A DNA stretch of 64,000 nt from contig NW_027361840.1 of NCBI RefSeq assembly GCF_039654945.1, positions 2,728,001 through 2,792,000 on the forward strand, in the 5' to 3' direction. The notes under the pieces were generated by a model that was not told where the DNA came from, searched no databases, and saw only the letters and a list, made by a program, of their open reading frames with translations. The position numbers and the translations under genes were made by a program. Shown in pieces: positions 417-64,000 of the stretch. This DNA is from Dendrobates tinctorius. Taxonomy: Eukaryota. Within the stretch, counting starts at the first letter, position 1; every line of letters begins with the position of its first letter.

Positions 417-3400
417 TTGGAGGAGTCTAGTCTGAGCCTTTGCATATCCTCCGTGGTGGTCTCCGAGTGTATGCTCCCTGCCAAGGTAGTTATCGGGGGC
501 CAAGAGCTGTCGATTACTGTATTTGTAGATAGTGGTTCAGCCGCTAATCTCATTGATGAAAAGTTTGCGCGTACTGCGGGATTTAAGGTGGAGACGCTGC
601 CTAATCCTATCCGGGTGGTTACCATCAATGACTCCCCTCTCTCACAAGGGGAGATTAAAGAGTTTGTGGCTGATGTAAAACTCCACATTGGGGTCCTACA
701 CTCTGAGCGTGTAACATGTAAGGTGCTCAGTAATTTACCTGCTCAGGTAGTTCTGGGGTTTCCATGGTTGTCTATGCACAATCCGGTGATTGATTGGAAA
801 ACCCAGGACATAATTCAGTGGAGCAGATACTGCCAGGAGAGTTGTCTGGCCACGTGTATCTCCGCTGTGACTCCCAGCATCCCGGAGCCACTGCTGGACT
901 TTGCTGATGTATTTTCTGAAAGAGGTTGTTCAGAGCTGCCACCGCACCGACCCTATGACTGTGCTATTAGGTTAAAACCGGGGGCCAAGTTACCAAAAGC
1001 CAGGATGTTTAATATCTCAGGTCCTGAGAGGCAAGCTCTCAAAGAATACATTGCAGAAAGTCTAAGCAAAGGGTACATCAGGCCTTCATCATCTCCATTG
1101 GCGGCGGGGTTCTTCTTTGTCAAGAGGAAAGATGGCGGATTACGCCCGTGTCTGGATTTCAGGGAACTCAACCAGATTACGGTTTGTGACCCCTACCCGA
1201 TGCCACTGATACCCGATTTGTTCAACCAGGTGTCTGGTGCCAAATGGTTTTCCAAACTTGACCTCAGGGGGGCGTACAATCTCATAAGAGTCCGTCAAGG
1301 GGATGAATGGAAGACGGCATTTAATACCCCTGAGGGTCATTTTGAGAATTTGGTGATGCCATTTGGGTTGACGGGCGCGCCAGCAGTATTTCAACATTTC
1401 ATAAATGATGTCTTTTCTCATCTCTTGGCGAAATTTGTTATCATATACCTTGACATTCTTATTTACTCACGCGACCGTGATGCACACATAGAGCATGTTA
1501 GGCAGGTGTTGCAGTTGCTCAGGGAGAACAAGCTCTATGCCAAGCTTGAGAAATGTGTATTTGTCGTCCAAGAATAACCTTTTTTGGGTTATGTAATTTC
1601 CGCCTCAGGGTTTAAAATGGACACCGCTAAGGTGCAAGCGGTGCTGCAGTGGGATCGGCCTGATAATCTCAAGGCGCTTCAGCGATTCCTGGGCTTTTCA
1701 AACTATTATAGGAAATTTATTAAGAATTTTTCTATGATTGCTAAGCCGCTCACCGACATGACTAAAAAAGGTACCAATTTTTCTGTCTGGTCTGAGGCTG
1801 CTGTGCGCGTGTTTGAATTCCTCAAAAACAGTTTTGCTTCAGCTCCCATCCTGGTTCAGCCTGATGTCTCCCTACCATTTACCGTGGAGGTGGATGCAAC
1901 TGAGGTTGGAGTGGGGGTGGTACTGTCTCAGGGTCCATCCTTGGGCGAATTGCATCCGTGTGCCTACTTCTCCAAGAAACTGTCGCCGGCCGAGCGTAAT
2001 TACGATATTGGTAACAGGGAATTGTTGGCCATCAAGTTGGCATTTGAGGAATGGCGACACTTCTTGGAGGGGGCTGTCCATCAGATTACTGTTATAACAG
2101 ACCATAAGAATCTGCTTTATTTAGAGTCTGCTAAACGCCTGTCCCCCAGACAGGCTCGCTGGGCGTTATTCTTCACCCGGTTCAATTTTTTTGTGACATA
2201 CCGACCAGGTTCTAAGAATACTAAGGCGGACGCCTTGTCCAGATGTTTTCCGGGTGGAGAGCCACGTGAGGATCCGGTGCCTATCCTCCAAAAGGGAGTT
2301 GTGGTCTCGGCTCTCACGACAGAGGTTGAGGCAGAGATTGCTGATGCTCAGGAGGAGGTACCGCCGGATCTGCTTCCTAATAAATCATTTGTGCCAATAC
2401 ACCTACGCTTAAAAGTGTTAGGGGAACATCACGATACTGTCCTGGCGGGTCACCCAGGAGTTAAGGGCACTCTGGAACTTGTATCACGTTGTTTTTGGTG
2501 GCCCAAAATCCGGCAGGACGTGGCCTCATATGTGTCAGCCTGTACCACGTGCGCACGGGCCAAGACACCACGCTCCCGTCCTGCTGGCACATTGCATCCT
2601 CTCCTTGTGCCCAGTAAGCCATGGACTGAGATTTCCATGGATTTCATTACGGATTTGCCCTCCTCGGCTGGGAATACGGTCATTCTGGTAATAGTTGATC
2701 GGTTCTCTAAAATGTCGCATTTCATTGCTTTGCCATCTTTGCCCAATGCGAAGACCCTTGCTCAGGTATTTATTCGCGAGGTGGTCAGACTTCATGGTGT
2801 CCCGTCTGACATTGTATCTGATAGAGGTACACAATTTGTGGCAAAATTTTGGAGAGCTTTTTGTTCACGCCTAGGGATTAAATTGTCTCATTCATTGGCT
2901 TTCCATCCTCAGTCGAATGGGCAGACTGAGCGTATGAACCAAAACCTGGAACAATACTTACGCTGTTTTGTGTCTGACAATCAGGAAGAGTGGTCGGCGT
3001 TTCTTCCTCTGGCTGAATTCGCGATAAACAATCATTATCAGGAATCGTCTGGGGAATCTCCTTTCTTTTGTGTTTATGGTCAACATCCCCAATTCTGTAC
3101 CTTGCGCCAAGGGAGCTCTGCGGGCGTCCCTGAGGAGGACCAGTTGGGAGCACAATTGTCATCCGTTTGGAGGAGAGTAAAGCAGCGCTTGCTGAATGTA
3201 GGTTATAGGTATAAACGTGTGGCTGACGGTAGACGTGTGCCTGGTCCGGACCTGTGTGTGGGTGATTGGGTGTGGTTGTCTACAAGGAACATCAAATTCA
3301 AAATACCATCGCTTAAGTTGGGGCCCAGGTTCATTGGTCCATTTAGGATCTCCGCAATTATCAACCCTGTGGCATTTCGTTTAGAGTTACCTGCCGTATA

Positions 3401-3770
3401 CAAGATACATAATGTGTTTCACAAGGCGTTACTTAAGAAAGTCGTGGGTGCTGTTGATGTTTCTCCTGTGCCACCACCTCCCGTCTTGGTGGATGGCACG
3501 TTGGAGTTTGAGGTGTCCAAGGTGGTTGACTCTCGGGTAGTGCGTCGCACTCTACAGTACCTGGTCCACTGGCGTGGCTATGGTCCTGAGGACAGGACTT
3601 GGGTGCCGGCCTCGGACATACATGCGGACCGACTGATTACAGTGTTTCATCGCTGCCATCCGGACAAGCCGGGTCCTCGACATTGTGAGGTTCCTGGGGT
3701 CCCTCTTAGAAGACGAGGTACTGTCATGTCGGACACTGTTCGCACCAGGGTGTCCGGCAGACAGCGGTAA
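417..3770 (+). pseudogene. Pol polyprotein PR-RT-RH-IN-chromodomain, disrupted
   Basis: ORFs 417-1577 and 1584-3770 are in one frame, split by an in-frame TAA at 1575-1577. The RT motif reads YLDILI, so one catalytic Asp of YLDD is missing. Confidence 0.93.
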
Positions 3771-4321
3771 TACCCCATCCTACCACATGGTTCTCAGCGG
3801 CGCTGGTTGGTCTTCTGATCCGGCTTGGATTGGGTTAACCAGGTTGTCATTCTGGCTGAGGGCTTAGCCACGCCCTCTGTCTTTAAATTGCCCTGTGTGA
3901 CTATGGGCGTCGCCGACTATAGCTCTTGCCTTGTGCTAAGCGATACCGGTCTGGAGTGGTGGTCTAAGGAGCATACGGTTGCTGGTGTAGTATATTCCAT
4001 TGTTGCCATTTTGCCTCCCTGTGTTGTATTATTTGGTTGTCCTTGCACATTACTGTATTCCCCTGTGTGTACGCGGTGTGGTGCATTTCCATTATCCCTG
4101 TCCATACTTATTTGTGGGGTCTGGTGTTTGGTCTCCTCACTGGGTGGAGGGTGGTGGGTTCAGCTTAGGGCTGGACCGGAGACAAGGACAGGGTGGAGGC
4201 CCAGGCAGGCACACCTTCAGTGTAAACCCTGGGTTGAGGGACAGACAGGGTTTCCCCTAGTCTGAGGGACACCGCAGGGGCCCCGGGGTTTCAGCCTAAG
4301 TTACCTAGGCTTCCCATGACA
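3722..4321 (+). repeat. 3' LTR of the sushi-like element (600 bp)
   Basis: Begins TGTCATG right after the purine-rich AGAAGACGAGGTAC and ends CATGACA (7-bp terminal inverted repeat). Gmr1 gag sequence follows immediately. Confidence 0.85.
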
Positions 4322-5638
4322 CTGACAGGCCGAGCAGCGGACGCCTCTCGCACAGTACCTGATGAGGACTGTATGGACTATGAGCAGATCAAAGAAGTGA
4401 TCTTGGCCCGGTATGCGCTGACACCAGAGGCCTATCGCCAAAAGTTCCGCGGACTTATAAAACGCGTAACCGATACCCACGCTGAATGGGCCTGTAAATT
4501 ACGGCGGTCACTGCTACAGTGGGTACAAGGGAGCCAAGCAACCACTAAGGAGGACGTCCTCCAGCTCTTCCTGTTAGAACGATTCTTTAATGGACTAAAC
4601 CCCGAGACACAGGAATGGCTTCAGGACAGGCGGCCAACGACTCTTGAGGAAGCCGCTCGTCTGGCCGATGAACATCATGATGCCAGGAGGCCGCAGTTCT
4701 CCGGATCAAAGGTGGTCACTAGGGGCCCGCCCATGGACCTGGAGGGCCCCAAAACACCGAAGATTGTAGGGGGACCAGCTAGAAACCCGGCCTACCACAG
4801 TCCCCCTGGGGCGCGATACCACACCTGCCATCAGCTGGGCCACCTGCACAGACAATGCCCCAACCGGACTCAGCATACCCAGTGGCCAAAGGCGGGAACA
4901 GCTACCTTCAGCCAGGCTGCTGTACACTGCTACCAAGGCGAAGCTGACCCGGCATTGGGGGCTACGACTAACCAAGGGGTGGAAGAGATGGAGGAAGTGC
5001 TGCATGAAGTAGACCCCGTGCAGGCAGCCCGGGCAGATAATCGACAACAGCATCGACAGGTTGTGTGGGTTAAAGGGAAACGTATGCAGGGACTAAGAGA
5101 TTCCGGGGCAACTTTGACCCTTGTGAAGCCTCATTTCGTCCGGGACCAAGAGAAGACGGACCGGACCGTGGCAGTCCGTGTAGCAGGGGTAGCCATAGAT
5201 CGACTACCCACTGCCAGGATTCACCTGAACTGGGAAGTCGGGGATGGCCTTGTTGAGGTCGGCTTGATGGAGGATTTGCCTGCAGACGTCTTGCTGGGAA
5301 ACGACTTGGGGCCCATGTTGTCTGCATTCTCGGTGGCCCCTCTGGCTGAGACATATCCTGTGACCACCCGGAGACAAGCTCGAGCTGCGGAGGCGGAATC
5401 ACACTCAGAGGCCCAGGTAAGACATTCCAGCCCTACACGTATTCCCATAGCCAGACACATTTCTTGGGCCACCCCAGATGAATTTAAGAGGGAGTTACTT
5501 GAGGATCCTTCATTAGAGGGATATTGTGGGAAGGCACATGAGGGGAGGGGGTACTGGAAGGGGAACAGTTTGTATGGAAGCAGGGACTCCTCTACCGGAT
5601 CACAGAGCAGCACCACACAGGGACGAGCCCCACTATAA
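4322..5638 (+). pseudogene. Gmr1-like gag (SCAN-related capsid domain, degenerate CCHC) plus aspartic protease
   Basis: YALTPEAYRQKFR...LERFF...WLQDRRPTTLEEAARLADE; HTCHQLGHLHRQCP; GLRDSGATLTLV; VLLGNDL. Confidence 0.88.
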
Positions 5639-5703
5639 AACGACAGCTGGTAGTTCCCAAGAAGTATAGGCAGGAGTTACTGCGAATCTCTCATGATATA
5701 CCC

Positions 5704-6921
5704 TTGGCCGGGCACTTCGGCGTCAGTCGCACCAGGCATCGTCTGACACAAAACTTCTTTTGGCTGGGGGTAACCTATGATGTTCGTCAGTACTGCCAGA
5801 CCTGTGACAGTTGCCAGTGCATTGGCAAGAGGGGGGATCGATGCAAGGCCAAATTACGCCCCCTCCCCATTGTGGAGGAACCATTTAGCCGAGTAGCGGT
5901 CGATTTGATAGGGCCGTTAGCCAAACCCAGTCCGTCCGGGAAAAAGTATATATTGACAGTGGTAGATTATGCCACACGGTATCCAGAGGTGGTTGCGTTA
6001 TCTAACATACTGGCAGAGACGGTGGCGGCCGCCCTGCTCCAGGTTTTCTCACGGGTTGGATTTCCCCGGGAGATTATCTCGGACCAGGGTACCCAGTTTA
6101 CAGCAGAGGTAACCAACCAACTGTGGAAGCTGTGCGGCGTAAAGTCCATTAGAAGCGCCCCGTACCACCCGCAAACCAATGGGTTGTGCGAACGCTTTAA
6201 CGGGACATTAAAACAGCTCATTGGGACTTTTACCAGGACCTACAGGGACTGGGAGAAATTCTTGCCACACCTCCTGTTTGCCTATCGGGAGGTGCCCCAA
6301 GAATCCACGGGGTTCTCCCCGTTCGAGCTGGTATACGGGAGGCGGGTAAGGGGACCCCTAGACTTAGTGCTGGAACACTGGGAAGGGGAGGGCCTTATAG
6401 AAGGGGTACCTATTGTACCCTATGTGCTGGAATTCCAGGACCGCCTACAGGAGCTGACCCAGGTTGTATGTGAGAACCTGCAGGCGACCCAGCGGCGCCA
6501 TCGCATATGGTACGATCGGAGGGCCAGAGAGTGCACCTTGGAAATAGGACAGAAGGTCCTGGTGTTAGAGCCCACTAAGCAGAAAAAGATTCAAGCTGCA
6601 TGGCAGGGGCCCTACCAGGTAGTGGGGAAAATAGCCGACACAACCTATAATGTCGCCGATTGTGACGACCCCAGGGTTATCCGCATGTTCCACGTGAATA
6701 TGCTGAAGCCCTACCGGGAGCGCCCTGAAGAGGTAGTGGCCATCTGTGCACCTGAAGCAGAGGATTTAGCCGGACTTTCCTTGCCGGATGTCTTAGGGGA
6801 AAGGACTCAGTCTAAAACATGGGACCAGGTACACTTGGGTGAAGACCTAGGCCCCCGGGAGAGACAGCAGGTGGAGGCGTTGTTGAGGCTGCGACAGAGG
6901 CCTGGCACAACACAAGGTTGA
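5704..6921 (+). pseudogene. Gmr1-like integrase, frameshifted from neighbouring domains
   Basis: GHFG...CQTCDSC zinc motif; VAVDLIGP, ISDQGTQF, HPQTNGLCERFN core; GPY motif. Confidence 0.92.
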
Positions 6922-6985
6922 GACCCAGGATCAGACCCCCCTGCGACAAAACCCCTTCCGCGTCCCTGAGTCTGTACGAGAGGGG

Positions 6986-8215
6986 ATGCGACAAAAGATA
7001 CAAGAGATGTTGTGTTTAGGGGTCACTGAAGAGTCAGATAGTCCCTGGGCATCCCCCGTAGTGTTAGTGCCCAAGAAGGATGGGACTACACGGTTTTGTG
7101 TAGACTATCGTAAGCTCAATGAGAAAACAGTGACGGATGCATACCCCATGCCGCATGTGGATGAGTTGTTAGACCGGCTGGCGGGGGCAAAGTATTTGAC
7201 CACCATCGATCTATGCAAAGGCTACTGGCAGATTCCCCTTAGTCCTGACGCTATTCCCAAGTCGCCATTTGTCACCCCGTTCGGCTTATTCCAGTTTCGA
7301 GTTATGCCATTCGGGATGAAGAATGCCTTGGCGACCTTCCAAAGGCTGGCTGACCGGCTTCTGGATGGTCTCCAGCACTATGCTTGTGCCTACCTGGACG
7401 ACATCACCATCTACAGTGCAACAAGGGAAGAGCATCTAAATCACCTAGAAACAGTATTGGACAGGATCCACCAGGGCAGAATCACCCTGAACCCAAACAA
7501 GTGTCACGTGGGCAAAGCAGAGGTTCAGTATTTAGGGCATTGGGTTGGAAGTGGGAAACAACGACCAGAACCAGCCAAGATTGAGGCCATAGCCAAATGG
7601 CCGATCCCACGCACTAAAACCCAGGTCATGGCGCTTCTAGGGACAGCGGGGTATTACAGGAAATTCGTTCCCAATTACAGCAGCGTAGCCAGGCTCCTCA
7701 CTGATCTGACCCGTAAGAACCAACCCCGCCAGGTAACCTGGACCTCAGAGTGTGAGGAAGCCTTCCGCCAACTAAAGGACGCCCTCACCAATACCCCTGT
7801 ATTGGCCGCACCCGATCCAACTACACGTGTCCTTGTTCATACAGACGCTTCTATGTTTGGATTGGGGGCAGTACTGAGCCAAGTCGGGCCGGACGGCCAA
7901 GGACACCCGGTAGCTTACCTGAGTCGGAAACTACTGCCCCGTGAAGTAAGCTATGCGGCCATCGAGAAGGAGTGCCTGGCAGTAGTATGGGCACTCAAGA
8001 AGTTGCAACCATATTTGTATGGACGACAGTTTTCCCTCCTAACGGACCATATTCCCCTAGTCTGGCTTAATAGGGTCTCTGGAGACAACACCAGATTGCT
8101 GCGGTGGAGTTTAGCCCTACAACCTCTTGACTTCACCATCCACTACAGACCCGGCAAACAAAATGGTAACGCCGATGGACTAAGTCGACAAACGGAACTT
8201 GTACCAACCCCATAA
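6986..8215 (+). pseudogene. Gmr1-like reverse transcriptase / RNase H
   Basis: FCVDYRKLN, MPFGMKNA, AYLDD, TDAS, YAAIEKECLA, TDH, NADGLSR. Confidence 0.94.
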
Positions 8216-8290
8216 ACTTCGGTCATCCCCAAACCGATCCGTTGAGGATCAGACTGTGTATGCCGATCGCGTCGCTGAAAAGGGGAGCCG

Positions 8291-8707
8291 TGTTACAGAA
8301 CCACTCAGCACCCAGAATATGTTGTGCAGTTATATGTATATATAATAGGTTCCATGTGAGATGCATGTCCCTAATGTATCAGCAGTGTCCGCCCTCCCCC
8401 CACGTTTGTTATTCCCACAGTAAACATCCGCAGGCTCCGGCCACCTGCGGCTTTTCTAATGCATGTCTGGCCTGACGCTTGTCTATTGGCCGGCCCTCTG
8501 TATCTGTGTGATATATTCTGTGTCCTGTGAGTAAAGTGTTGTCAGACTGGAAATACATGGAGAAGCAGTGATCTTTTATATGCGCCCATGCACTCAGAGG
8601 AATTCCAGCCAGCGTCATTCATTCAGACTCCAGCCAACGCAGAGCGGACCTCCGAAAATACGGGGTGGTACTGAAAGAGGTACCCCAGCTTGGAAGACCC
8701 CGTTACA
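8291..8707 (+). repeat. 3' LTR of the Gmr1-like element (~417 bp)
   Basis: TGTTAC...GTTACA termini directly after a polypurine tract; internal AGTAAA polyA-like signal. Confidence 0.75.
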
Positions 8708-9050
8708 TAGACAAGTACAATAAACATGTGTAGGACAAGGGACACACAAGTACATAAGGAGAGAGGACCCTGCCCGCGAGGGCTCATAGTCTACAGGGAT
8801 GGGTGAGGATACGATAGGAGAGGGTAGAGCAGATTGTGCGGTGGTTCAGTAGACCGAGGATCATTGCAGGCTGTAGGCTTGTCGGAACAGGTGGGTCTTC
8901 AGGTTCTTCTTGAAGGTTTCCGTTGATGGTGATAGTTTGATGTGTTGCGCCAAGGAGTTCCAGAGTATGGGGGAAGCACGGGAGAAGTCTTGTATGCGGT
9001 TGTGGGAAGAAGAGATAAGGGGGGAGTAGAGAAGGAGATCTTGAGAGGAT
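8708..9050 (-). mobile_element. L2 LINE 3' fragment
   Basis: Reverse strand encodes ...LISSSHNRIQDFSRASPILWNSLAQHIKLSPSTETFKKNLKTHLFRQAY*, homologous to the L2 C-terminus at 34195-34593, followed by an L2-type 3' UTR. Confidence 0.85.
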
Positions 9051-12000
9051 CGGAAAGATCAGCTCTAGAGAACTATATGGACCGTCAAATTATACCACGT
9101 GGGTTACGGGTACAACTATACCCATCATTTGAATTGGAGGATGATGTCTTAATCAAACGTTGGATTTCAGCAGCAACAACATGCTCTTTGGAATTTATCC
9201 AAATTATCATCGATAAGAATACAGCATCATTAAAAATTATCGATGATGACATTGATGAGCTTGAGAAACTCATACTAAAAGACATACCAGTAGAAAATGT
9301 TGACAATATTTTGGTTGACATCAATAAGAATGCTGACAAATGGGAGAACGAAGTGTGTCAAAATAAAATTAAGAAATTCCAATGGGATCTTAATGATTAT
9401 GACACCAATAAAATATATCGCTGGCAAAATTAAAAAACCAAGCAGCCCAACAAAGGTAATGGAGGAAAAGACAACTCAAGATCCACTCGCTATAAAAGTC
9501 CCTCTGAGAGTTCAGCACCCTCAGTGTCAGACAACAACACATAAGCGATGGTGAAACCAACCATAGTGAGACATCCAGCATAAGACCTACACCACGGAAT
9601 GACAAAAGACTTCCAGATATAGTTACAAGATCAAGTCATCATATACAAGGCAACCAATTTAAGGTAATCAATCTTTCTGAACATATATTAACTGATGTTC
9701 AGGTTGAGCTCCTGGGGAAGGGTCTGACTTTCTCACCTTCATGTCGCTTAGACACATTCACGACGGTGAGGGATCTACACCTATTCACCAGGAAGCTCAT
9801 TCTTAAAAAAAATCCACCACAAAAACTGCCTTGGGGAAATCACGGGTACAAAAGAGGAAGAAGAAGCCGTAAGGAACTTGGAAGATTTATTACAGGAAAA
9901 CACCGAGTTTAAGGTAAGTAATTTTCCACATAAGATCTTTAACAAATCTAAAAAATTTCCTCCAATGGGCACATGTTCGGCTGTTGAAATTTTTACTAAG
10001 GTCCTTACTACGGAAATAGAAGCCCTTCAGCCAAAACCTTCATGGTCTTCCAACTTGAATAGGGAATAAAAACAGGCTCTCATCAATCTACAATCGCTAC
10101 AAAATGTAGTATTTAAGCCGGCAGACAAAGGGGCAATGTAGTTATATGGCCTACAGTACTATATGAAAAACAAGCACACAAACTACTTAACGCCCCCCCT
10201 ATGCTATCGAAAACTTCCGTATAATCCTCTTTCAAAATATCAAGCCGAACTTCTCTCTATTGTGGAGAAAGCCTTTGAATCAGGTATTATACCGAAAAAC
10301 ATGGTTGAGACTATACACAATCTTCGTCCAAAACTACTGACACTATATGTGCTTACCAAATTACACAAAGACCCGGTGAACCCTCCCGGAAGACCCATAT
10401 CTGGAAATGGTAGCCTCTGTGAGATCGTTGCAAATTTTATTGACCATTACCTAAAGCCCTTGGTAGGCACACTTCCATCTAACATCCAGGACACAACAAC
10501 AGCCTTACAAAAACTAAACCATGTATACCTCGAAGAACACATGATAATGGTAACTGCCGATGTTGAGGCATTGTATACCTCCATCAGGCATGAGGATGGC
10601 ATTAAAGCTGTGTCCTGGTTTCTTAGAAATAGCAACATTGAATTAGACATGATTGAATTGATTTTATGCCTCCTTGATTTTGTGCTCAATCATAATGTTT
10701 TTACATTTGATAAACAAATTTATCTACAAACACAAGGCACTGCAATGGGGGCTTCCTGTGCCCCATCATATGCTAACCTCTTCTTAGGGGCATGGGAAAG
10801 GGACATTTTCCAAAGTGATTTGATTCCTGGAATACATAATGTACAAGGGAGGATGAGGTACATCGATGATGTATGATTTATATGGGACGAAATAGCTGAC
10901 ACCCTCCATACCTTAATGAGCAAATTAAATGAAAACAGTCTTAACATCAAATTAACATATAAATTTGGCAGAGAATTGGATTTCCTGGACCTAAAACTGT
11001 GTCTGTTGATGGGATGATTAATACAAATTTATGTGGGAAACCCACAGCCACCAATTCCCAGCTACATGCCACATCATCCCACCCACCTGCAACAATCAGA
11101 GGCATACCAACCGGTCAATTCCTAAGAGCCAAACGTATCTGCTCCAAACCATCAGATTTTGAAGACCAAGCCGTGGATCTTACAAAAAGATTCCTAAACC
11201 GTGGTTATAGTAAAAGAAGCATTAAAGACGGATACAGGCGGGCAAAACAAGCGTTGAGGGAACATTTACTCTACTCAGCCTCAAAAGATTTCAATAAAAA
11301 TGATAATCAATTGAGATTCATCTCCACTTTCAACAATCAGTGGGATGAAATCAAAAAACTATTGCAAAAACATTGGAATATTTTACTAACAGATCCAGTT
11401 TTGCGCAAAATTCTTCCCTCTGGTCCTTCTGTCGTAGCCAGAAGAAGCTGTAATTTGGGAGACATTCTAGTCCATAGTCACTGTGACCCCCACCCGCCAA
11501 GTCTCAAACGACCATTATCAAAAGGCTTCTTCCCGTGTGGCCTTTGCAAAGCCTGTATTACTATGAAAAAAATCACATTCCTTCTCTAATGCTGATGGAT
11601 CAAAAAATGTTGAAATTAGGAAACAACTCACCTGCGCATCCCAAGGTGTTATATATCACGCCACCTGCTCCTGTAATTTAATTTACATCGGTCTAACCAC
11701 TCGGGAGCGAAAAATCCGGGTAAGAGAACACATTCAGGATATTGAGAAAGCCAAGTCAATAGATGATTATTCTCTCCTGAAAACTTTGCCCCGCCACTTT
11801 AAAAGTTACCACAATTCGAATCCCAAAAATCTTGTCTTTAAGGGTATTGGTCAAATTAGTTTGGGAATACGTGGCGGTGATCTGGGCAAATCCCTGGCCC
11901 AGCTAGAAAGTGGATCTACCGGTCAGGCACCATCACCCCATATGGCCTTAATGAGAACTTTGGCTTTAATTCCTTCTTATAATCCAATAAAATATAGCAT

Positions 12001-60132: not shown

Positions 60133-60689
60133 TTATCTGTCACCTACAGAGCTTTGGTTAGAAAGTCCCCTTGCACTTCCTCTTCTGACCAGTAGATGGC
60201 GCCCCAGTATCACACAAGGCTCATTGGCTTTCTGAGGACAAATCATTTTAACCCCAGAAAGCAGAGAGACATGTGAGGGGAGACATGAGAGGCGAGACTG
60301 CTGCAGAAAGTCCCTGTAAATCCTTTATCTCATCTCCAGTCACACACAAAGCAGCATCTGTAAATAATTTAGAGCTCTGACTCTGAATAGCAGAACTATG
60401 AGCGCAGCTCTGGATGTGATTGGAGTGTAAGTGGTTATGTGAAATTAGAGTTTTGTAACCAATTAGTGTAAACAGAGACGAAGAACCGAAGCAGCCAATC
60501 ACAAAGCCGCAGAGCTGCTCACTCCGTTCCCCCTTTAGTTCTTTGTCCGCTGGCTCAGTCCTTTCTACCTTAGTCCCGATCCCCGGGTGGCAGTCACATG
60601 ACCTCGCGCCTCCGCGCACGCAGTTACTCATTAGCTTGTGCAGAAGTTTCTCCTGCTTTTAATGAGGATGCGGCCGACAATCATTAACC

Positions 60690-61260
60690 ATCCGCCGTCC
60701 ACAACCGCATGCTGCACACATGAGCCGGAAGCCTCCCCGTATTGACTGGTTTGTCCTTGTGGCCATGAGGACGTTCATCATGGAGCCTCTTTGATGTTGA
60801 TGACTCAGTCATCGCCCTTTGAATGATCGACGCCTCGATGATCGACCCATGAATGATCGACACCTCGGTGATCACCCTGGAATGATTGATGTCTCAGTAA
60901 TCGCTCCATGAATGACCAACCCCCATAATGAGCCCTCGACCAGTCACGTACCCCCAAGTAACGTGCTTTCTCAAGACCTTTTACACATTTTTTGGGGTTT
61001 GCTGTTAGGCCTGTGGCTCTGAGCCACTCCCACTTGTACAAGATAAGTGATTCTGACAGTCGTCACTGTAGATGATGACATGGCCCAGGTACGCCGACGC
61101 ATGCTTAACATGGGATTCTCAAACTATGTCCATCTGCCTGTGAAACATGGCTGAGGCCCCATGTAACCCAAAAGGCAAGTCAACATGGTGATGAGACCCT
61201 CCGGGGTTAGAAGGTGGTCTTCTCTCGCCAACTTTGTCAAAGGCACCTGCCAGTGACCAT
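60690..61260 (-). mobile_element. Heavily decayed Gypsy RT fragment
   Basis: LPFGLHGASAMFHRQMD and GLTANPKKC...ARYLG remnants on the minus strand. Confidence 0.65.
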
Positions 61261-61383
61261 TGATCAGATGGAGTGTTGTGAAGTACGGGCCTGACCCAGT
61301 CTCTTAATTTCTTCATCTACCTGGGGAATTGGACAAAGGTCAAATTGTGACCATAACGGTCCGTCCAGCTTTGGAATTCGGAC

Positions 61384-63945
61384 TGTGATGACACAGCGTG
61401 TGTTCTTAATTATACCAGACATATTTCCCAATAGGACAGGAGAACAATTGTTCATATGAGCCTGAATGTTGACTCTTGAAGTGATGTTTGTTACCGCTGA
61501 TTGTGCTGCTATCCTTGGTGGACAGGGACGCAGGGTCATTGAACAATCAATGATTGCTAATATGTGGATTACCTATTGTCCCAGTCCATGCAGCTTGTTG
61601 ACCTGCAAACATTGAAGGACAAACTATGCAGATTGATTGAATACTCGAACAATGAGAGTAGACCTCATCCCATATTCCCCCTGACCTGATGGCCTGGAGG
61701 ACAGATGTGGGTATAAAAAGGGACCTCTATCCTTCTGCAGAGACACGCAATTGAACAGCAGCCAAAAAACCATGGCTCCAACCACAGAAATACAGATTTA
61801 AGACTCTACATGACAGTAGCCATGCCACCATGGCTCCAACCGGAGGAATACCAAATAAATACCGATTTGAGACACTCTGCAGGATAACAGAGGACCATGG
61901 CCCCTGCTGGAGGAATACAGATCTGATCCGTTGACCATCTCTGAATCAATGGAGACGTTCGGATAAGCCAAGTTGGGACAATCAGGTCACCTGGCCACGT
62001 ACCTTGATGGACTGTCAGCTTCCTAAGCTTGTCATTACCTTCTCTCTGTGGGTGCCCACCAAAAGCAGGGAGCCACTGGTGGAGGTGGTCAGCACTGGAA
62101 GCCCCAAAGTCACAGCTGCTCTAATTCCGGCAAGCCAGTGGAAGGGTGAGACTCTGTAATTTGCCCCATCTTGTGTATTTGCTTGGACTGTTCTGTATGT
62201 TCTTGTCTGTTGGTGATTCAGTAAAGTTTTACCACCACTCTGTTAACAACCGGCTCACCTTGTGTTGCCTGAGTAGCATTATGCTCATAGGGAAGGAGTG
62301 CGGTCGTCAGTGGGATGAGCCCTGGTCCATGCGGTCTTTCTAAAGGGATCCGGGCCAGAGGACAAGACCACCCACTGACCCTCGTGTCTCCACACTTGAT
62401 GACAGTGGGGAGATACTACTCAGGCAGGCGGATCCGGGAGAGCTGCAGGGGACTTGTGTTCGTAGACACCGATCAAGTGCTCCACAACCAGGGAGGCAGA
62501 TACAGTCCCAGCATACCATAGGTGAGGCATACACAGCAGGTTTTGGACACCACCATGTCCAACCCAACAAGCTCGGCCTTGGGAGCAGAACCACAGGGGA
62601 TATGCAGGTACAACAAGAAATGGGGACTACAGGAGTTGTGGCAGCTTCGGCAGATCAAATGCAGGGCCACTGACACTCAAGTCGGATTTGATACAGAAAT
62701 TGGTCCTTTGGGATGGCAAGAACATTGTGGAGGACGATGAGCTTGACGAAGAGGAATTGAACTGCCTGCCAAATCAAGGATCCAGTGGTAATCTGGAATC
62801 AAATACTCAGTCCCAAGCAACCCAAATCCATGAGTTGTTGGTCACATTGGGACCTGAAGCCTCAAGCGGGAAAAGGAGCTGGAGTAGTTATTCTATTGGT
62901 ATGGGCAGATCCGTACCATCAAGTTGAAGAATCACGAGGGAGGTAGGGCTACATCTTTTGCTTTCATCAGCTTCCAGAAACCACAGGATGCAGAGGATGC
63001 TATGTGTGGATGCAATGGATACGAGATCAGTTCTCGTGGATTACATGAGCAGTTACCCAGGTCAAGCCGGGGATCAGGAGGATGATTGGAAGCCTATCAT
63101 GTCTGGCTAATTAAGAGGGGGGCAATGTGATTAAATAGCATTAATTCATTTTTTCTAGTAGGTCAAGAGACATAGGCCATTTTTCATATGAGCCTGAATG
63201 TTGACTCTTGAATTGATGTGTGTTGCAGCTTATTGTTCTGCTATCCTTGGCGCACAGGAATGCAGGGTCATCGAACAATCGATGTTTGCTAATTTGTTGA
63301 TTATCCATTGTATCAGTCCATGCAGCTTATTGACCCTCGAAGATTGCAGATTGAATTCTTGAACAATGACAGTTGACCTTATGTATCCTTGCCCTGAACC
63401 TGTGGATGATGGCCTTAAGGACAGATGTGTGTATTAAAAGGGACCTCTATACTTCCGCAGAGAGTCACTACAGAACAACAGCCTGAAACCATGGCTCCAA
63501 CTGCAGGAATATAGATTTATGACTCTTCATGACAGTAGCCAAGACACCATGGCTCCAACCAGAGGAAAACAGATTTGAGACACTGTACAGCATGACAGCT
63601 TAAGGGACTGTGGACCCAGCTGGAGGAATAGAGATCTGATCAATTGAGCATCATTGAACCCATGGAGAATTTCAGAGAAGCCAAGTTGTGACAATCAGGT
63701 CACCAGGCCCCATGGAGACGTTCAAAGAAGCTAGGTTGAGACAATCAGATCAGCTGGCACCAATGGACTGTCATCTTCCTAAGCCTGTCATTATCTCCTC
63801 TCTGTGGGTGCCTGTCAAAGCGGGTGCCACTGGTGGGGGTAGTTGGCTCTGAAAACCCCAAAGTCGCAGCTGCTCTTATCCCGGCGAGCCAGCGGAAGGG
63901 TGAGACTGTAATTTGCACCATCTTGTGTATTTGCTGGGACTGTAC
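61384..63945 (+). mobile_element. Old non-autonomous LTR element: 5' LTR 61384-62394, short internal region, PPT, 3' LTR from 63126
   Basis: Two diverged direct repeats (for example ttcatatgagcctgaatgttgactcttgaa at 61451 and 63183); TG start and CA end; degenerate PBS-like TTGATGACAGTGGGAG; PPT AAGAGGGGGG at 63113-63122. Confidence 0.8.
62867..63082 (+). pseudogene. SRSF9: Captured SR-protein RRM1 fragment, SRSF9-like, inside the LTR element
   Basis: Translates REKELE*LFYWYGQIRTIKLKNHEGGRATSFAFISFQKPQDAEDAMCGCNGYEISSRGLHEQLPRSSRGSGG, collinear with the SRSF1/SRSF9 RRM1 pattern (EKxLEDLFxxYGxIRxIELKN...FAFxxFxDPRDAEDA..xRNGYxxG.xRLRVEFPR). Confidence 0.8.
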
Positions 63946-64000
63946 TAGAGTCCACCACACGTCGCCTCCCCTTTCCATGCCTTTTTGGCAATGTCCATCA

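Follow-up and report, generated by a model that had tools for sequence, protein, structure and literature searches.

A decayed LTR element of the poison frog Dendrobates tinctorius with a fragment of spliced SRSF9 mRNA in its internal region

The window analyzed here, a stretch of 64,000 nucleotides (nt) of the Dendrobates tinctorius genome (assembly GCF_039654945.1, contig NW_027361840.1, forward strand, positions 2,728,001 to 2,792,000), contains at 61384-63946 (+) a long terminal repeat (LTR) element in which two diverged LTRs surround an internal region of 731 nt that includes a piece of the coding sequence of the splicing factor SRSF9. The element opens with a 5' LTR of 1011 nt (61384-62394, +), which starts with TGTGAT, ends with CCACA (..TCTCCACA at its 3' end) and contains a TATA-like TATAAAAA (61712-61719, +) and a poly(A)-signal-like AGTAAA (62230-62235, +), the latter reading AATAAA in other copies. 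Downstream of the 5' LTR a leader was delimited (62395-62554, +) with a weak primer-binding-site-like sequence, CTTGATGACAGTGGGGAGAT, immediately after the LTR, followed by a stretch formerly labelled 'gag-like' (62555-62866, +) that has an ATG at 62555 and a frame broken near 62679. Next come the SRSF9 mRNA fragment (62867-63082, +), corresponding to the first RNA recognition motif (RRM1) and running from ..REKELE.. to the ..PRSSRGSGG linker, and a short segment from the 3' untranslated end of the parent element (63083-63125, +), which includes the polypurine tract AAGAGGGGGGCAA (63113-63125, +). This tract adjoins directly the 3' LTR (63126-63946, +), which also starts with TGTGAT and has lost about 200 nt of its 3' end. 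A 50-nt tandem duplication in the 3' LTR (63659-63758) is single in the 5' LTR (61946-61995); length variation of this type was also observed in some contigs of other copies.

The extent of both LTRs was established from the repeat pair and from Logan contigs of four organisms (A-D), which were aligned to 60400-64000 at a likeness of at least 80% (7,700-9,350 matching contigs per run). The LTRs are 82% identical over 760 aligned columns, with a Kimura two-parameter distance of 0.21, and differ by 68 transitions, 69 transversions and ten indel events; their alignment covers 61384-62194 and stops at 62194/63946. The 5' LTR continues beyond the repeat pair to 62394, because about 75-110 copies per run (contigs, four runs) turn into unrelated heterogeneous sequence directly after this position and an LTR fragment of Ranitomeya variabilis aligns to 62107-62397. 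Conversely, over 100 contigs per run pass 63946 into the sequence found after 62194 in the 5' LTR, indicating that the 3' LTR is truncated at this point. Terminal direct repeats with TG..CA ends (TGTG..CACA in the 5' LTR) together with the polypurine tract identify the structure as an LTR retrotransposon. The original prediction, which was made from the sequence alone, had proposed two clearly diverged LTRs, an old event and a polypurine tract, and these proposals agree with the 18% difference between the LTRs, the TGTGAT starts at 61384 and 63126 and the tract at 63113-63125; the 5' LTR is longer than the repeat pair suggests, and the 3' LTR is incomplete. A heptamer, GGACTGT, occurs both at the 5' insertion boundary (61379-61386) and shortly ahead of the position where the 3' LTR is cut off (63933-63940), which may be due to chance or may be a trace of the loss of the 3' end.

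Read in a single frame, 62867-63082 encodes REKELE, a stop and the 65 residues LFYWYGQIRTIKLKN to PRSSRGSGG before a TGA, with the in-frame TAG at 62885-62887 and the TGA at 63083-63085. The proposal that this segment is the RRM1 of a serine/arginine-rich (SR) protein with an internal TAG was borne out by a Pfam RRM_1 match (E 8e-10) and by the best match to a solved structure, the RRM1 of SRSF1 (E 5e-14). An exhaustive profile search produced one standout match in a single stretch, a 418-residue 'uncharacterized protein' of Ranitomeya variabilis with 61% identity, followed by SRSF9 and SRSF1 proteins with identities of about 51-53%. A word-index protein search with the 65-residue piece gave no candidate, which is uninformative because the length window of this search excludes full-length SR proteins. 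Sequence features point to frog SRSF9 as the source, and not merely to an SR protein in general: frog SRSF9 and the fragment have in common the motif FAFISFQ and an insertion of two residues ahead of PFAF, both of which are absent from amniote SRSF9 and SRSF1, and in the protein tree the fragment is placed inside the frog SRSF9 clade. With the TAG at 62885, an end in the glycine linker, an RNP2 part that is not recognizable and neither an intact frame nor RRM2 nor RS domain, the SRSF9 piece is a fragment and not a gene.

The SRSF9 gene models were compared with the window one exon at a time. Against the srsf9 exons of D. tinctorius the fragment is identical at 164 of 212 nt (77%), distributed as 89/117 nt in exon 1, where the match ends 4 nt short of the exon end, and 75/95 nt in exon 2, where it starts at the first base of the exon. 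Some retroelement proteins carry RRM-like folds, as is the case of LINE-1 ORF1p, and the RRM could in principle be a native domain of the Gag of the element and not a host capture; this degree of nucleotide identity to the host exons, the frog-specific features of SRSF9 and the fact that the related autonomous-type elements have no RRM make such an origin next to impossible.

In the srsf9 gene of D. tinctorius the two matching exons are separated by an intron of 282 nt. In the fragment the exon 1/exon 2 junction is located at 62985|62986 with nothing in between, so that '..FQKPQ DAEDA..' reads through. The intron-bearing srsf9 genes of Lerista (a skink), Gastrophryne, Xenopus laevis, D. tinctorius and R. 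variabilis all have an exon 1 that ends with ..(F/Q)(E/D)PR and an exon 2 that starts with DAEDA. Since the fragment runs unbroken across the exact position of this intron, it derives from spliced RNA, as was anticipated in the original prediction, which had placed an intron at DPR|DAEDA; the fragment aligns to the end of one exon and from the first base of the next and is not contained within a single exon. Neither a poly(A) tail of its own nor a flanking target duplication is present around 62867-63082, and a GGAG/AGG microsimilarity, read from short strings, is found at the 3' junction. As LINEs (long interspersed nuclear elements) are abundant in the window, it could be argued that the SRSF9 piece is an independent processed pseudogene inserted later by LINE activity into an existing LTR element. 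This origin is considered very improbable, as the fragment lacks the poly(A) and the flanking duplication, consists of 216 nt from the interior of a coding sequence, has junctions that recur identically in other copies and species and belongs to a cargo lineage that is fused to a protease in Ranitomeya.

The nature of the sequence located upstream of the RRM (62555-62866) is less clear. The original prediction had regarded it as decayed 'gag-like' sequence, and this label was not supported: no Pfam match was obtained for 62555-62866, searches against the PDB with both halves gave nothing up to E 10, a word-index search with the 133-residue open frame over this stretch gave nothing at E 0.01 or better, and the local alignment to the Gag of a Discoglossus pictus element described below scored under the shuffle mean, even when the frame break was bridged by an X. 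A SAP-like resemblance seen by eye was dropped for an alignment score below the shuffle mean, and a weak match in frame 1 (62851-62910) to the DTG region in the protease of Ranitomeya (E 0.7) was discarded, since it reads out of frame a stretch whose nucleotides clearly identify it as SRSF9. The stretch is multi-copy in the four organisms, at a depth below that of the leader, and contigs show that copies vary by one letter in length near the frame break at 62679. Possible identities of this stretch include leader sequence, a further captured piece and the N-terminal part of a Gag that has diverged.

The contigs of the four organisms indicate that the architecture described above is not restricted to the window. 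Organism A, which contains contigs with zero differences at a depth of about 19, is probably the one from which the window was sequenced. In general, contig depth peaks over the LTRs, is still high through the leader to about 62577 and is lower over 62578-63061, evidencing that the leader is common to many more family members than the cargo; over the RRM part, depth amounts to about 8-30 times the single-copy level in the four organisms. Contigs that are 80-85% identical to the window bridge the leader and the unassigned stretch (e.g., 62502-62806), the unassigned stretch and the RRM (62626-62893, 62611-62893 and 62547-62866), and the RRM, polypurine tract and LTR (62858-63122 and 62838-63303) in all four organisms. 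Because many contigs at this level of likeness cross identical junctions in four organisms, the element belongs to a non-autonomous family and is not a local accident; the structure without pol and with the SRSF9 piece is common to many diverged copies, in agreement with the multi-copy, non-autonomous family that had been proposed. A contig of organism B with 96% identity over 62759-63104 and one of organism D with 92% identity over 62838-63303 may be orthologues of the window copy. Within the window itself no second copy of the element was found, and in a tblastn search the internal pieces matched nothing else in the window.

Information on the parent of this family comes from cargo-free relatives. 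In organism A, 31 contigs match the window from 63079 onward and carry upstream a different, consistent sequence reading ..SDGLSP.., whose nucleotides resemble those of ADGLSR, the motif with which RNase H ends in related elements a short distance ahead of the polypurine tract. Judged from these strings, RNase H appears to be the last pol domain in the cargo-free relatives. The window also contains, at 4316-8215 (+), a Gmr1-like Ty3/gypsy element whose coding sequence is divided among three long open frames, namely a SCAN-type Gag plus protease of 440 residues (4316-5638, +), an integrase of 405 residues (5704-6921, +) and a reverse transcriptase plus RNase H of 409 residues (6986-8215, +), arranged in the order Gag(SCAN)-protease (PR)-integrase (IN)-reverse transcriptase (RT)-RNase H (RH). 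The order PR-IN-RT-RH is said to have been used by Goodwin and Poulter in 2002 to define the Gmr1-like Ty3/gypsy elements. This element is truncated at its 5' side before the Gag N-terminus, which leaves no Gag N-terminus for comparison, and it is taken as a relative and not as the parent because its LTRs are dissimilar to those of the 61384-63946 element. It adjoins a 728-residue open frame (1584-3770, +) of another Ty3/gypsy pol, with the RT end, RNase H and integrase in the usual order.

The parent of the SRSF9-bearing family was probably a Gmr1-like Ty3/gypsy element and not a retrovirus, as suggested by three indirect lines of evidence: the RNase H-tail motif in the cargo-free relatives, the fusion of the sister cargo in Ranitomeya to a protease of the type found in SCAN-Gag elements, and the PR-IN-RT-RH element at 4316-8215. 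The SCAN domain is derived from the Gag of Gmr1-like elements (PMC3424704). The relatives of the window element share with this group the SCAN-type Gag, the PR-IN-RT-RH order and an RNase H beside the polypurine tract; unlike Gmr1-like elements, the window copy holds none of these domains, and its membership is deduced from its relatives only.

A longer version of the cargo was found in Ranitomeya variabilis. The RefSeq gene model LOC143817539 (L001:10001-17483) is a chimera of transposon pieces in which exon 1 contains a protease and the SRSF9 cargo and the later exons correspond to integrase fragments of other elements; residues 1-276 of the protein matched in the profile search are encoded by one exon. 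This stretch aligns continuously with the Gag-PR-SRSF9 frame of Discoglossus (55% identity, 226 residues, E 2e-69). The alignment begins upstream of the DTG motif of the protease, takes in RRM1, the linker and RRM2 and extends to ..DDTKF; no intron interrupts the SRSF9 part of the Ranitomeya stretch at either of the two SRSF9 exon junctions that it crosses. The cargo stops at ..DDTKF, and about 60 nt further on there is a 28-nt poly(A) run. The window RRM groups with the Ranitomeya cargo in a starred clade (97/89), and the two have in common substitutions, read from the alignment, that are absent from host SRSF9. In addition, the Ranitomeya cargo is followed 4 kb downstream by an LTR fragment of the same family with the same orientation, a link that is suggestive only. 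Given that the window cargo groups with the Ranitomeya copy, yet lacks the protease and retains only RRM1, it is read as a deletion derivative: judging from these alignments, the window copy probably arose by internal deletion of a longer protease-SRSF9 (RRM1 plus RRM2) cargo and was later multiplied. The junction in the window copy would then probably be a secondary deletion inside the longer cargo and not the original point of capture.

Based on the evidence presented above, it is very likely that 61384-63946 is a dead copy of a non-autonomous dendrobatid LTR family without pol, which carries 216 nt of spliced host SRSF9 mRNA, probably had a Gmr1-like parent and originally contained a longer cargo. 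The sequence of events would have started with template switching between the RNA of the element and SRSF9 mRNA during reverse transcription, by which host sequence was inserted (LTR-mediated retroposition). The original cargo would have joined the protease to RRM1, the linker and RRM2 of SRSF9, and an internal deletion would have given rise to the version found in the window. As this derivative kept the LTRs, the leader and the polypurine tract, it could have been copied in trans by autonomous relatives, reaching between about ten and a few dozen copies in each genome. The copy in the window would have decayed afterwards, with LTRs that are now 18% different, stops in every frame and the 3' LTR end lost; at present it is without function.

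Several observations weigh against this interpretation. No target-site duplication is readable, the original 3' boundary having been lost with the end of the 3' LTR. The primer-binding-site-like sequence, which the original prediction had pointed out and which may be of the tRNA-Leu type, is a weak candidate, matching the post-LTR sequence of the Discoglossus element in 13 of 19 letters as counted by hand; a tRNA scan of the window for its partner detected no tRNA gene. Transitions equal transversions between the two LTRs (68:69), compared with about 1.7:1 among family copies, and several indels separate them, so the LTRs may come from different subfamily members or templates. According to Pfam, the copy itself contains no Gag or pol domain, and its Gmr1-like membership is indirect. 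The 312 nt upstream of the RRM have no detectable homologue in Pfam, the PDB or the word search. Moreover, no single contig of another copy spans the element from LTR to LTR, the shared architecture having been pieced together from overlapping short contigs. Finally, the source of the captured piece may have been DNA, namely an intronless retrocopy of SRSF9.

Some of these features would also be expected if the locus were a local mosaic, in which nested insertions and deletions had joined two LTR copies of separate origin, whether solo or partial, to a piece of an SRSF9 retrocopy, giving a unit that never transposed as such. The 18% difference between the LTRs, their odd 1:1 ratio of transitions to transversions, the several indels, the truncation of the 3' LTR and the absent target duplication are in line with such a history. 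However, the polypurine tract and the leader are placed exactly where the 3' LTR starts and the 5' LTR ends, respectively, and every internal junction is crossed by contigs of many diverged copies in four organisms, which makes the mosaic quite improbable.

The element is inserted into a decayed reverse-transcriptase pseudogene of greater age on the reverse strand (60805-61383, resuming at 63947-64000, -), with open-frame fragments ..LPFGLHGASAMFHRQMD.. and a weak match to RVT_1 (E 0.076), the continuity of the two flanks being judged by eye. A run of 15-nt units of the ..ATGATCGAC.. type is located a short way upstream of the element at 60786-60923, within or beside this pseudogene.

An independent view of SRSF9-carrying elements is provided by Discoglossus pictus (GCA_027410445.1). 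At L003:5603-8421 this genome contains a young LTR element with identical LTRs of 226 nt, a CCCCC target duplication and a polypurine tract, in which a single intact frame of 670 residues comprises Gag (SCAN, CCHC), the N-terminus of the protease and SRSF9 from codon 7 to the stop, including both RRMs and the RS tail; an RNase H tail lies downstream of this frame. A second form (L010:3800-5050 and L011:3800-5060) encodes a complete protease followed by part of the SRSF9 5' untranslated region (5'UTR), the whole coding sequence and the last ~75 residues of RNase H, with the same 3' junction as L003. This form looks like an earlier state of the capture, of which L003 would be a deletion derivative. 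About 60 annotated 'SRSF9-like' proteins of D. pictus are in fact cargo of LTR elements. The ratio of nonsynonymous to synonymous substitution rates among three Discoglossus copies is 0.43-0.67, three copies being too few to separate selection from decay after insertion. The Discoglossus element probably belongs to the same clade as the window element and also has SRSF9 complementary DNA (cDNA) in place of pol, joined to the protease. Unlike the window copy, it is young, has ~60 annotated copies and encodes both RRMs together with the RS tail in an intact frame; synonymous sites and the approximately unbiased (AU) test indicate a separate acquisition of its cargo.

Of the synonymous sites compared, 53 of 112 are different between the Ranitomeya cargo and hyloid SRSF9 mRNA, 79 of 111 between the Ranitomeya and Discoglossus cargoes, and 106 of 156 between the Discoglossus cargo and hyloid SRSF9 mRNA; the Discoglossus cargo is saturated against both. 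Nucleotide identities group the cargoes as synonymous sites do, the protein tree splits them into two clades, and the AU test rejects a single cargo clade (p 0.004). These comparisons indicate that the Discoglossus and dendrobatid cargoes were acquired separately; an alternative to two acquisitions is a single old chimera whose cargo was later replaced by recombination with host mRNA. A short resemblance between ..ARIHL.. of the protease and ..GRIYV.. of SRSF9 near the junctions may favor template switching at that place, which we only infer.

The similarity of the junctions, in turn, would fit one ancient capture, with a Gag-PR-SRSF9 lineage that predates the split of these frogs: the protease joins lie within about six codons of each other in both lineages (after ..VAVRVAG / ..AFSRAG), and the SRSF9 joins lie within about eight codons of one SRSF9 position. 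A common capture is nevertheless rather unlikely, considering that the Ranitomeya cargo is nearer to hyloid SRSF9 mRNA than to the Discoglossus cargo, that nucleotide identities produce a separate grouping, that the AU test rejects one cargo clade, and that the apparently earlier Discoglossus form has a different 5' junction, which includes the SRSF9 5'UTR.

The replacement of replication genes by host sequence has well-known precedents. In acutely transforming retroviruses, spliced host cDNA replaces replication genes in frame with Gag, producing Gag-onc fusions that depend on a helper. These retroviruses are exogenous and somatic and are selected through cell proliferation, whereas the window family is endogenous and present in the germ line, with a splicing factor that binds RNA as its cargo. 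Among endogenous elements, LTR-mediated retroposition has been described across animals, with spliced host mRNA located within discontinuous LTR-element sequence and microsimilarity where the pieces are joined (Tan et al., 2016, PMC5131818). The window element resembles these chimeras in the piece of spliced host mRNA, the microsimilarity at the fusion point and the loss of pol; the chimeras of Tan et al. are mostly single young retrocopies, while that of the window kept LTRs, leader and polypurine tract and multiplied into a family that several species have in common. In crocodilians, endogenous retroviruses captured the mRNAs of KIT-ligand and nectin3 (Chong et al., 2014, PMC4299795). Both the crocodilian and the window families have host cDNA on an endogenous LTR lineage, occupy several loci and made the capture before speciation. 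In contrast, the crocodilian elements are retroviruses with complete captured frames under purifying selection, and the window copy has a probable Gmr1-like parent and a broken fragment of 72 codons.

Literature searches retrieved no SRSF9-carrying retrotransposon, and the paper on the D. tinctorius genome is silent on gene capture. LTR-mediated retroposition being an already known kind of event, the window copy taken alone is a dead fossil of a known process. Related frog elements apparently acquired SRSF9 on more than one occasion. The wider story, which includes a family present in several species, a longer protease-SRSF9 ancestor and a separate young family in Discoglossus, is only partly established.

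A broader reading, which we regard as tentative and on the whole doubtful, is that frog Gmr1-like elements took up SRSF9 cDNA at least twice, in the Discoglossus and dendrobatid lineages, at the same stretch of the protease, and that active families keep Gag-PR-SRSF9 because an RNA-binding module helps the element, in which case the window copy would be the fossil of a transposon-borne splicing factor. The benefits could include the export, translation or packaging of unspliced element RNA, or interference with host splicing or silencing.

The about 60 elements annotated as 'SRSF9-like genes' in Discoglossus illustrate how elements of this type inflate gene counts. The window copy matters as a lead, as it ties to a poison-frog family present in several species and to a young, intact family in Discoglossus. 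If true, the repeated capture of SRSF9 by one transposon clade would point to a strong mechanistic bias, for example an abundant co-packaged mRNA that has microhomology to the protease region, or to a benefit of the cargo to the element.

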